A stretch of DNA of 64,000 nucleotides from assembly GCF_022045235.1 (NCBI RefSeq), contig NW_027266330.1, positions 34,224,001 to 34,288,000 on the forward strand. The letters run 5' to 3'. The translations under genes were made by a program, and so were the position numbers. Below, piece by piece: positions 5,564-63,347 of this stretch. The notes beneath the pieces are model-generated. The model saw only the letters and a list, made by a program, of their open reading frames with translations. It was not told the DNA's origin and did no database searches. Position 1 is the stretch's first letter. Each line of letters begins with the position of its first letter. Source of the stretch: Haliotis cracherodii (Eukaryota).

Positions 5564-8500
5564 TTATGTCCCTACAAAATACAAGCCAAAGAAACTGGAA
5601 GGAGGAAATTTGTAAATATACGATGTGTTGCTGACGTCGACAAACACGAGATCATCTTGTCTCAGTCGGACAGTAGCAGACAGGAAGCTCGTGACGAATC
5701 TTTCACCAGCTTCCGGCATCGTCTTCTTGGCCACAAGGATAACAGTACTGCCGAGGTTTGGCAGGTGCGTGTTGCTCCTTCTCATGATATGGAGGATGTT
5801 GTCAGGACGTCGTCGTCGTTGGCGGGTCTTGAACGTGAAGAAGGAGTAGATGTGGTAGAGGCCTGGCCTTGTTACGCGTAGAGTGTTGTCGTCACAGCTG
5901 ATGTCGCTGCTTCTGTAGGCGGAACCGTAACCAAATGTATCTGTCCATGCCAAAGAGGGATCTGGGAGGAGGAGTAAAGTGTGTTACATCCAAGTTACAG
6001 AGCATTACACATGGGCGAAGTCAATGTCGTTTTGGTTTTGGTTTGTTGTTTAACGCCGCACTCAGCAATATTCCAGCCATATGACGGCGGCCTGTAAATA
6101 ATCGAGTCTGGACCAGACAATCCAGTGATTGACATCATGAGCATCGATCAACAGAATTGGGAATTAAAATAGGTATGTGGTCGACCTCATCATATACAAG
6201 TGGTATTTTGTAGTAAATCAAATGTCGTTTTGGTTTTGGTTTGTTGTTTAACGCCGCACTCAGCAATATTCCAGCTATATGACGGCGGTCTATAAATAAT
6301 CGAGTCCGGACCAGACAATCCAGTGATTGACATCATGAGCATCGATCCACGCAATTGGAATCAATGACATGCATCAACCAAGTCAGTGAGCCTGACCACC
6401 CGATCCCGTTCGTCGCCTTTTACGACAAGCATAGTCGCCTTTTACGGCAAGCATGGGTTGCTGAAGACCTATTCTACCCCGGATGTCGTTGGTTGTTTAA
6501 CATAACAGAATAAAAAAACCTGATTTACTACAAAATACCACTTGCATATGATGAGGTCGACCACATACCTATTTTAATTCCCAATTCTGTTGATCGATGC
6601 TCATGATATTAATCACTGGATTGTCTGGTCCAGACTCGATTATGTACAGACCGCCGTCATATAGGTGGAATATAGCTGAGTGCGGCGTTAAGCAACATTA
6701 ACCTATTCTACCCCTGATGTTCACGGTTGCCTGAATAGTAATATACCATGTTTATTGGTGCTATGTGATACATTACATTCAAATAATGGCTGACAAATCA
6801 CCATTGGCATATGACCATGATGTATTTCGAACGGTTCAGAAGAACATGTTCTCAGCATACAGTGAAAATATTAACCTCCATTCATATTCTAGACTAAGTT
6901 TACTTACTGGTCGCAGTCAATGCATTACTATCAAGATACGTGTGGGCTCCTGTGTTGTAGTTGTGTTTGACTGCAGAGTCATTGTTATGGGTGTCCTGGT
7001 TCCTGGTGCTGGCGCTATCATGGATTCGGTCAGTAAACTGAAATTATACAAAATATGTCCATCTCTCGTTGTGCTTGTAAACCCCATTTTATTTGGAGCA
7101 GTTCCATTCTCAGTGTCCTGTTTTCGTTCCTGTCTCGCAATTAATGTTCCACCACACTATTACAACGACTATTATAATGACTAACATATTACTTGTCGTC
7201 TTTAGGTTTTGGACTGTGATACGAGTTTGTTGACGTACACGTTCGTGTACATGCACACTGTCAAGCATGGTGTTAGAGAGGTACCTTTCATCATTTCATG
7301 TGTTATTTGTTCTGAGGAGGTGGTAAGATCATATACTTACTCGAACTGTGATAGAGACTTCTCAAAATTTGGATAATCTAATAAGTTCTATTCATATATT
7401 AGATTACTAATAATATTCATAATAAGATTACTAAATTTCACTGAATGCAGTTTCAGACATCCTAGGTGAATACAAGGTAGGAAACATCCAATATCAGGCT
7501 ATTTATATTTTACAGTCACCCTGCTCTCGTACACAGCTAAAACCTCCTCACAGAAAGAAGTAGAGTGATCAATGATTCAAGTATGTCGTAAAAGGTGGTA
7601 TTGCGTCAGTGTCCTATTGATCTATGTTTCTCTGTCAATGTGCAAGGCATGATACTTTCTACTCCAGCTAATGGACCTATAATACGGCACTGCTTGAACT
7701 GCATCTGGTTGCCTGTTTTCAAACCTTTTTCTGTTGCTTCTCCATGGCTTGGAATAGCACGTCGTACCGTGAATAATATAAACAGCCCAGCTTGACGTGT
7801 AATTACTTTACCCTGATGTGTTTATTTTCTAGTCACTTCTATTTTAAGACCCAACGAATCCATTGTGAGTGAAAAATAAACACACGTCTTTAAAGCATAA
7901 CATAAACACATTCTGTTCCAATCAGCTACCCGTGAAGATCCGGGGTAGAATAGGTCTTCAGCAACCCATGCTTGCCGTAAAAGGCGGCAATGCTTGTCGT
8001 ACGAGGCGACTAACGGGATCGGGTGGTCAGGCTCGCTGATTTGGTTGATGCAGGTCATCGATCACAATTGGGTGGATCGATGCTCATGATATCAATCACC
8101 GGATTGTCTGGTCCAGACTCGATTATTTACAGACCGCCGTCATATAGCTGGAATATTGCTGATTGCGGCGTTAAACAACAAACAAACAAACAAACATAAC
8201 TGATAACATAATACATTCATATGAAGTAATGATAACTGTAAAGGGAGCAAAGATAAACTTACGATCGCCAGGAGCCTCTGCAGACCTTCGACATTTTCCA
8301 GACAGCAAACGGAAGTTGAATCAGTGACGTAATGCACGGTTAGATCGTGCAAGTCGGGCCTGCTGTCATTGCCCGGATGTACACCGACAGACATGCAGCT
8401 CGTGCATACTGTGCTCTTATGTACTGTAGACACAACAGTTTTAGAAAACAGACTGGCACTGTCAGTTGCCTTGGTGTTGATGTGTTTACACAGGTAGAAC

Positions 8501-8727
8501 CCAAACGCAATGTTTAGTGACAACGACAGCAAGAAGGCCGAGATAACGATGCAGTATTTGGTTGTGCAGGACGCCCTATCTCGTTGTGACGTGTCTGTTA
8601 AATGAAGGCCGCCCACTCTTGTGTAACGGTAACCAGACTTGCCAGGAATCGTAGACTGATCCAGGGATACAGTTGATAGTTTACATTTCCTGGTACTCTG
8701 TCCGAGCAACAAGGAGAGAGCGCCCAT
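5564..8727 (-). CDS. TNF superfamily ligand G1 (type II membrane protein, ~330 aa, 3 exons)
   Basis: Exons 8727-8263 (ATG, TM helix, CTSC..CC; donor GTAAGT, phase 0), 7037-6908 (FTDRIH...GAHTYLD; TTTCAG acceptor, GTAAGT donor, phase 1) and 5961-5564 (CCCAG acceptor; THD motifs W..., GLYHIYS, TSFLSA, LRQDD, FFGLY). The frame is continuous across both introns. Confidence 0.9.
7928..8195 (+). mobile_element. SINE family A (non-tRNA structured head, (AAAC)n tail), representative copy
   Basis: ~250-bp element CCCGTGAAGATCC...GAGTGCGGCGTTAAACAAC. About 20 full or partial copies, e.g. 2088-2339(-), 6228-6484(-), 11803-12048, 13457-13720, 15657-15920, 17571-17822, 26995-27243(-), 29798-30065(-), 31149-31340, 37095-37352, 51565-51840(-), 60445-60635. 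Confidence 0.85.
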
Positions 8728-62900: not shown

Positions 62901-63347
62901 TATACTTACAAGGTTGAGTAGAGTTTGTAGATGTTCGGAATGATCCAGGCAACACAACGAGGATTTCTGACCCAGGTCTATGACCTTGACCTTTGACATT
63001 AACGGCGAATTGTCCGGTTCCGGAAGGTGAAGAGAATCGCACCTCACACATATAGAGTTAGACATATCAGCATCAAACTGAACCTCGGCGTTCGTATTCA
63101 CGTTCAGTCTTATGTACATGTACCAACTCACTAAAGCAACGTTGATAGCCATTGATACCAAAAGGACAACGACACAAAAGCATGTTGATGGCCGCTGGTT
63201 CTGTTTTCTGGCGATCCCCTTCGTTGGGTTTGGACACACGACAGGCTGATATACCCCGGTGTGTGATGTGGTGAATACCTTCACTTTCTTTCTTCCAAAA
63301 CTGTCGAATCCATTCGGGAGAAGCCTCTCACAGACAGAGGAAGACAT
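59970..63347 (-). CDS. TNF superfamily ligand G6 (~310 aa, 3 exons)
   Basis: Exons 63347-62910 (TM, CVRC..CC; GTAAGT), 61556-61448 (VVGEYY...SAHLYLD; 109 nt) and 60355-59970 (THD: GVYFLYSHVT, TSFLAA, LRRHD, YFGL). Confidence 0.9.
61655..62115. repeat. ~59-bp tandem repeat (~8 units) in G6 intron 1
   Basis: Unit ATGACAATGACAAGTCACGTACGTATTTAATTAAATAAAACGAAAGTAGAATACTGAGA. Confidence 0.9.
62172..62333. mobile_element. MITE with TTAGGGACCGA termini (possibly PIF/Harbinger-like)
   Basis: Imperfect inverted ends TTAGGGACCGAC...GATCGGTCCTTA. Matching termini also occur near 12407-12444 and 19447-19470. Confidence 0.5.

Follow-up and report, generated by a model that had tools for sequence, protein, structure and literature searches.

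An array of TNF ligand superfamily genes in the genome of the black abalone, Haliotis cracherodii

Multi-gene repertoires of TNF superfamily (TNFSF) ligands have been described in molluscs. The first mollusc TNF was reported from Haliotis discus (De Zoysa et al. 2009, cited in bioRxiv 10.1101/2024.07.27.603686), Crassostrea gigas was credited with 23 TNFSF genes (Gao et al. 2015, as cited in PMC12843592), and up to 27 Eiger-like paralogs were recorded in one mollusc (bioRxiv 10.1101/2024.07.27.603686). In the present study, a 64-kb stretch of the H. cracherodii genome (RefSeq assembly GCF_022045235.1, contig NW_027266330.1, here C67, positions 34224001–34288000; the window) was analysed. It contains six TNF-type genes, G1 to G6, which are the middle six of an eight-gene minus-strand array and are very probably functional genes of the TNF ligand superfamily. 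No publication on this eight-gene array turned up in a literature search.

Array layout, gene models and transcription

In the list of open reading frames (ORFs), the last exons of the six genes appeared as ORFs of 124–147 aa, each accompanied by a minus-strand ORF of 145–238 aa located 2–3 kb upstream. All six genes are encoded on the minus strand, and the first coordinates of their last exons are 5564, 14407, 24471, 32255, 50016, and 59970, which gives spacings of 8.8, 10.1, 7.8, 17.8, and 10.0 kb. The preliminary description of this DNA, made from the sequence alone, had placed six same-strand genes about 8–10 kb apart with about 18 kb between G4 and G5, and the measured values (7.8–10.1 kb and 17.8 kb) agree with it.

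The preliminary description had also suggested that the array may continue past the window, and one further intact gene was found on each side. A profile search of the whole 1.18-Gb assembly revealed same-strand TNF homology domain (THD) exons at C67:34217780–34218163 (about 6 kb before the window) and 34290934–34291326 (about 3 kb after it). Both exons also matched PF00229 above the gathering score in a genome-wide search, and each flanking gene had an upstream exon with a transmembrane segment, the cysteine motifs C-x2-C and CC, and the usual exon end. Since a transmembrane/cysteine exon and a THD exon are present on each flank, the array consists of eight genes arranged head-to-tail over about 76 kb. 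No additional THD exon was detected within 100 kb of either array end by the profile search and the PF00229 genome search.

G1 (5564–8727, 330 aa) has three coding exons: 8263–8727, encoding the tail, the transmembrane segment, and the cysteine stalk; 6908–7037, carrying the 'AH' motif; and 5564–5961, encoding the THD and the stop codon. The same layout, with intron phases 0 and 1, was found in G2 (14407–17233, 321 aa; exons 16784–17233, 15396–15513, and 14407–14804), G3 (24471–27839, 339 aa; exons 27339–27839, 25102–25222, and 24471–24868), and G6 (59970–63347, 310 aa; exons 62910–63347, 61448–61556, and 59970–60355). G4 (32255–36091) has a first exon from 35654 to 36034 or 36091, a mini-exon at 33731–33764, an AH exon at 32889–32987, and a THD exon at 32255–32646; its product has 301 aa if translation starts at the ATG at 36034 and 320 aa if it starts at the one at 36091. 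G5 (49796–53568, 273 aa) is built likewise, with exons 53031–53348, 52145–52172 (mini-exon), 51457–51546 (AH), and 50016–50401 (THD). The phases of G4 and G5 are 0, 1, and 1.

All introns of the six genes are GT..AG, the coding totals are divisible by 3, and there are no internal stops. The donors of the first exons (at 8262, 16783, 27338, 35653, 53030, and 62909 in G1 to G6) are strong and of phase 0 in all six genes, reading GTAAGT, GTGAGT, GTAATA, or GTGTGT. A middle exon with the conserved motif (G)AH-L/T-Y-L-D is present in every gene, and its donor and the acceptor of the THD exon are of phase 1 throughout. In G1, G2, G3, and G6 the AH exon is 109–130 nt long, with a phase-0 acceptor located upstream of where the AH motif would suggest. 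Acceptors directly upstream of the motif were considered and rejected: their phases (1, 2, 0, and so on) clash with the phase-0 donors of the first exons, and RefSeq orthologs place them further upstream. The mini-exon that precedes the AH exon is 34 nt long in G4 and 28 nt in G5, where the AH exon (90 nt in G5) runs from phase 1 to phase 1; a colinear alignment to H. rufescens P0158, the ortholog of G4, confirms the mini-exon of that gene. Thus, the three-part layout of transmembrane, AH, and THD exons claimed earlier applies to four of the genes, while G4 and G5 have four coding exons with an extra mini-exon. The claimed GT-AG introns were confirmed, with one set of phases in G1–G3 and G6 and another in G4 and G5. 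The claimed lack of disabling mutations was borne out by the open frames and canonical splice sites.

In these comparisons the exons were searched singly, and RefSeq proteins (P0151 and others) were used for the full-length analyses. The three exon peptides of G1 were identical to the H. cracherodii RefSeq protein XP_071084891.1 (P0151, 'uncharacterized protein'), over 155/155, 43/43, and 131/131 residues. A second H. cracherodii protein, XP_071085434.1 (P0003, isoform X2), corresponds to exons 1, 2, and 4 of G5, with the AH exon skipped. These matches show that the genes were already predicted in RefSeq yet left unnamed; most members of the family carry the label 'uncharacterized protein'. 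Colinear full-length partners were H. rufescens P0155 (321 aa) for G2, H. asinina P0004 for G3, and H. rubra P0005 for G6; G4 had one in each of the three species, P0158 (301 aa) in H. rufescens, P0006 in H. rubra, and P0156 in H. asinina.

No coding exon is touched by an assembly gap. The gaps lie between G3 and G4 (28556–28709 and 28962–29092), between G4 and G5 (49046–49239), and in intron 1 of G4 (34362–34495 and 34585–34747), between exon 1, which ends at 35654, and the mini-exon, which starts at 33764. Because the G4 exons on either side are colinear with P0158, P0006, and P0156 with zero residues missing, no coding exon is expected in the intron gaps.

Transcription was investigated at G5, where contigs of sequencing runs were placed on the region 49300–53900. 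In two runs from one organism, X1 and X2, whose type was guessed as RNA, the depth covered the exons and the high-copy intronic repeats, and was zero in the unique intron bins. Record 19 of X2 (1262 nt) matched 49796–50400 with its letters 1–605 and 53031–53568 with its letters 725–1262; the 119 nt in the middle consist of 1 nt of the THD exon, the 90 nt of the AH exon, and the 28 nt of the mini-exon, which confirms the latter. Record 2 of X1 (149 nt) matched 51456–51546, with a 30-nt flank on each side matching elsewhere, and record 8 of X1 reached 28 letters past 53031. The contigs therefore represent a G5 mRNA with all four exons joined, spanning about 49796 to 53568, with an untranslated region of about 220 nt at each end. 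They include the AH exon 51457–51546, and no AH-skipping contig was present among the rows listed. A contig of a relative (run X3) continued for 58 letters after the boundary at 53031, from which the same splice follows for that relative; run X19 covered the introns too and behaves as a relative's DNA.

TNF-superfamily identity and protein architecture

The preliminary description had called the six genes TNF-superfamily ligands and had named PF00229 as a check, and four kinds of evidence agree with this. All six THD exons matched PF00229 well above the cut-off of 23 bits (G1, 47.4; G2, 53.2; G3, 57.7; G4, 48.6; G5, 62.9; G6, 55.4). A family profile of 69 full-length relatives, searched against the sequences of solved structures in the PDB, matched FasL first (E 5e-42), followed by TRAIL, TL1A, LIGHT, RANKL, TNF, lymphotoxin-alpha, and CD40L; over FasL, TRAIL, TL1A, LIGHT, RANKL, and TNF the E values ranged from 5e-42 to 1e-24. 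The AlphaFold2 model of G1 contained a transmembrane helix at residues 56–85 (predicted local distance difference test score, pLDDT, about 95), a helix at 147–169, and a THD at 185–329 (pLDDT >90). Foldseek aligned this model with FasL, TRAIL, LIGHT, CD40L, TL1A, and TNF at probability 1.00 and target template modelling (TM) scores of 0.72–0.88, with 0.80–0.88 for FasL, TRAIL, LIGHT, and CD40L.

The first exons of G1 to G6 had no Pfam match. Aligned with one another, they share a hydrophobic segment, a C-x2-C that does not vary, two adjacent cysteines (CC), and the same exon end. Each of the six encodes one hydrophobic 19-mer (mean Kyte-Doolittle value 2.2–3.0) with a net charge of +1 to +5 in the preceding 15 residues, and by the positive-inside rule the six proteins would be type II membrane proteins. 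The agreement of Pfam, the family profile against solved structures, the predicted fold, and the type II layout identifies the genes as TNF-superfamily ligands.

Since the jelly-roll fold is common to C1q and the THD, and the G3 exon gave a weak C1q match (E 0.14, 12.9 bits), the domains could in principle be C1q-like heads of lectin or complement type. This reading is scarcely credible: that score fell below the PF00386 cut-off of 23.7 and occurred in one exon only, against 47–63 bits for TNF, the proteins are predicted to start with a transmembrane anchor rather than a signal peptide and collagen stalk, and the top solved relatives in both sequence and fold were all TNFSF ligands. Membership in the C1q family was accordingly refuted by the Pfam scores, the family profile, and Foldseek.

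As TNFSF ligands, the proteins would be ordered as a short cytoplasmic tail, a transmembrane helix, a four-cysteine stalk, a helical linker, and a C-terminal THD, with strand A of the THD (the AH motif) encoded by its own exon. By analogy with the family, they would form trimers at the cell surface, possibly also shed, and may signal via TNFR-type receptors in immunity, apoptosis, or tissue homeostasis, as do the characterised TNFSF ligands of molluscs and vertebrates.

When residues 180–330 of G1 were modelled in three copies, the trimer scored 0.91 and the best of 3 controls 0.01; at least 91% of contacts were common to the runs, and the pLDDT of the partner was 86. This pass may reflect memory of solved TNF trimers. 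In the calibration set, 21 of the 30 proteins whose solved structures are pairs of one chain attained the mark, against 0 of the 23 whose structures are single chains. This result bears on whether neighbouring genes, above all G1 and G2, might encode the subunits of obligate heterotrimers of the LTalpha/LTbeta type. G1 and G2 are adjacent, their THD exons are 66% identical, and THD heterotrimers exist in vertebrates (LTA/LTB and APRIL/BAFF). However, the homotrimer model of G1 alone was a confident one, homotrimers make up the majority of known TNFSF ligands, and the remaining pairs are 28–43% identical, so that an array of obligate partners appears improbable. That the individual ligands bind different receptors, or form heterotrimers as LTA and LTB do, is speculation by analogy.

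The stalk module, C-x2-C followed by CC, is encoded in exon 1 of all six genes (8263–8410 in G1) and was present in 57 of the 69 full-length homologs. Among the homologs whose names were looked up, it was carried by the bivalves Sinanodonta, Argopecten, Pinctada, and Ylistrum, the gastropod Gigantopelta, and the brachiopod Lingula anatina, and was absent from Megalops FasL, Pristis TNF-like, Latimeria FasL, and Mercenaria TNFSF10-like. In the G1 model the stalk is a small three-strand element (residues 106–144) around the four cysteines, with block-mean pLDDT of 69–89. The module had no Pfam match.

A polybasic run, R/K-Q-R-R-R-R-P, was observed in the THD exons of G1 (5780–5800) and G2 (about 14620–14640), in an inter-strand loop at model residues 244–251. 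The orthologs of both genes in H. rubra and H. rufescens retain it, but the paralog group at 51.8 Mb does not. Its composition fits a furin-type or heparin-binding motif.

Divergence, selection and history of the array

The THD exons of the six genes are deeply diverged, as the preliminary description had stated: outside the G1/G2 pair, identities do not exceed the 28–43% given above, and those of the first exons are 18–43%. For the THD exons of G1 and G2, the Nei-Gojobori method gave nonsynonymous (dN) and synonymous (dS) divergences of 0.23 and 1.15 and a dN/dS ratio of 0.20. Where dS was measurable, paralog dN/dS of the THD exons was 0.07–0.27; in these pairs dS was unsaturated or barely saturated (0.56 for G4 against its 51.838-Mb paralog and 0.32 for G3 against its 51.699-Mb paralog). 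The other pairs in or beside the window showed synonymous saturation, with proportions of synonymous differences (pS) of 0.79–0.88. Ratios near 1, taken beforehand as a sign of pseudogenes, were looked for in the paralog THD exons and not seen where dS was measurable. In the G5 THD exon, the differences listed against X3 comprised at least 7 synonymous and at least 3 nonsynonymous codons, and those against X19 at least 4 and at least 1, a count that is no more than indicative.

A maximum-likelihood tree of 187 THD segments was built by a quick search, with Shimodaira-Hasegawa-like approximate likelihood ratio test (SH-aLRT) support. G1 grouped with H. rufescens P0001 (98), G2 with H. rufescens P0155 and H. 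asinina P0159 (99), G3 with H. asinina P0004 (96), and G6 with H. rubra P0005 (99). The orthologs of G4 from H. rufescens, H. rubra, and H. asinina clustered with it, within a clade supported at 98. H. asinina P0010 ('TNFSF6-like') was considered as the ortholog of G5 and rejected, as the tree placed it with the C67 paralog at 34.657 Mb. Because the genes group with orthologs of other Haliotis species and not with their neighbours, the duplications are older than the splits of these abalone.

Synonymous saturation, dN/dS of 0.07–0.27, the grouping with orthologs across species, and the transcription and splicing of G5 sustain the earlier proposal that the cluster is old and selectively retained. 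An alternative is that some members are expressed pseudogenes or drift neutrally, and that only one or two are functional cytokines. Expression was verified at G5 alone, G5 lies on a long tree branch (0.68), and the first exons evolve fast, with H. cracherodii sharing 61–63% identity with H. rubra or H. asinina. Against this, none of the six frames is interrupted, the splice sites are canonical, the THD exons have the low dN/dS given above, and G1–G4 and G6 have full-length colinear orthologs in up to three other species. The THD exons are also better conserved than the first exons, with 81% vs 63% identity for G1 against H. rubra and 75% vs 61% for G4 against H. asinina. Decay or drift of most members is therefore highly improbable, and six functional ligand genes remain the preferred interpretation.

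Several points weigh against this interpretation. For the six genes, the evidence consists of sequence, models, and the G5 transcript. Transcript support covers G5 among the six; the type of the runs was guessed, and the contigs carry neither strand nor level. The AH-less G5 isoform predicted by RefSeq, being without strand A of the THD, could not fold as a full THD. At the two gaps in G4 intron 1, exon colinearity speaks for the coding sequence and not for the continuity of the DNA. The predicted G1 homotrimer may mirror memorised TNF trimers. The dN/dS values are rough, as paralog dS is near saturation, and the cross-species codon count for G5 rests on the differences listed, which are minimum values.

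As to history, the tree placed G6 as sister to a locus at 34.6469 Mb and G5 as sister to one at 34.6575 Mb, both on the plus strand. The sisters of G5 and G6 thus lie at 34.65 Mb on the opposite strand, the pattern of an inverted copy of the G5–G6 pair about 370 kb away. Relatives of G1/G2, of G3 together with the upstream-flank lineage, and of G4 are located at 51.67–51.84 Mb on the same chromosome, about 17 Mb away. Old tandem duplications gave at least five subfamilies (G1/G2, G3, G4, G5, and G6), and blocks of the array were copied later.

In the whole genome, 60 matches to PF00229 exceeded the cut-off. Most of them form tandem clusters, and the chromosome of the window holds the majority. 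They lie on C67 at 34.2–34.7, 38.12–38.26, 40.97–41.03, and 51.67–51.84 Mb, C7 at 33.86–34.07 Mb, and C31, C48, and small contigs. This count takes in split exons and probable haplotig copies, and the gene number is therefore nearer 50. The copies on C48 share 94–95% protein identity with those at 34.65 Mb, with dS of about 0.11–0.13, and could stem from a second haplotype or from recent duplication.

A broader proposal is possible but doubtful. It holds that the roughly 50 loci, most of them clustered on one chromosome, are the largest TNF-ligand repertoire so far observed in a mollusc, that the stalk module is a new disulfide-locked or metal-binding collar under the THD trimer, and that the ligands co-expanded with putative receptors of the Grindelwald/BCMA type as a diversified innate recognition system.

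Repeats in the window and comparison with known systems

A minisatellite of 166 copies of a 30-bp unit occupies 41354–46354, between G4 and G5, and a Tc1/mariner DDE_3 transposase fragment lies at 37832–38164 on the plus strand (Pfam 32.8 bits, E 7e-8). This 5-kb minisatellite and the DDE_3 fragment make up much of the 18-kb spacing between G4 and G5. A second Tc1/mariner-type DDE_3 fragment, at 3633–3863 on the plus strand, scored below the cut-off (18.3 bits). Two further intergenic minisatellites were found at 54136–55827 and 55857–57446, with G-rich 18/58-bp units and a 33-bp unit repeated 48 times (94% match), and the large minisatellites produce long spurious ORFs on both strands. Two adjacent plus-strand ORFs at 39053–39940, 163 and 128 aa long, lie in GC-rich sequence that has a proline-rich segment; they had no Pfam match and are possibly a mobile-element remnant.

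The introns of G5 contain a very high-copy short interspersed element (51610–51917 and 52534–52687), whose translation reads roughly IAWIDAHDVNHWIVW. Its summed contig depth was 10^5–10^7 in all four runs mapped. Similar pieces were located at 6065–6373, 25567–25629, and 27027–27095, and the element recurs in several introns of the array.

The black abalone is critically endangered and suffers from infectious withering syndrome. The present analysis provides exact exon models for eight clustered TNF-type cytokine genes that RefSeq labels 'uncharacterized', and the array supplies candidates for work on immune expression and ligand-receptor pairing. Rather than recent copies, its members are subfamilies that are old and under constraint. 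To judge from the approximately 60 matches of THD exons and from the conservation of the cysteine stalk, TNF signalling in lophotrochozoans appears to be richer than the 23–27 genes published would indicate.

The closest sequence and fold matches of the array were the vertebrate ligands FasL (TNFSF6), TRAIL (TNFSF10), TL1A (TNFSF15), and LIGHT (TNFSF14), with which the abalone proteins share the type II layout, the predicted trimer, and a C-terminal jelly-roll THD with AH, W, G-Y-x-Y-S, and F-G motifs. However, identity in the fold alignments was 17–26%, with no one-to-one orthology to any vertebrate member, and the C-x2-C ... CC stalk module was absent from the three vertebrate homologs looked up. 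The MHC-linked genes TNF, LTA, and LTB of vertebrates are likewise tandem TNFSF genes long kept together; they are three genes with documented LTalpha1beta2 heterotrimers, whereas the abalone array has eight same-strand genes that are much more diverged. With the TNFSF expansions of other molluscs, the array shares a lineage-specific multi-gene repertoire and the stalk module, which is present in bivalve homologs, and it differs in number, with a rough count of about 60 PF00229 exon matches in this genome vs the published 23–27 genes. The array does not reveal a new kind of system, and belongs to the kind of TNFSF expansion already established in molluscs.

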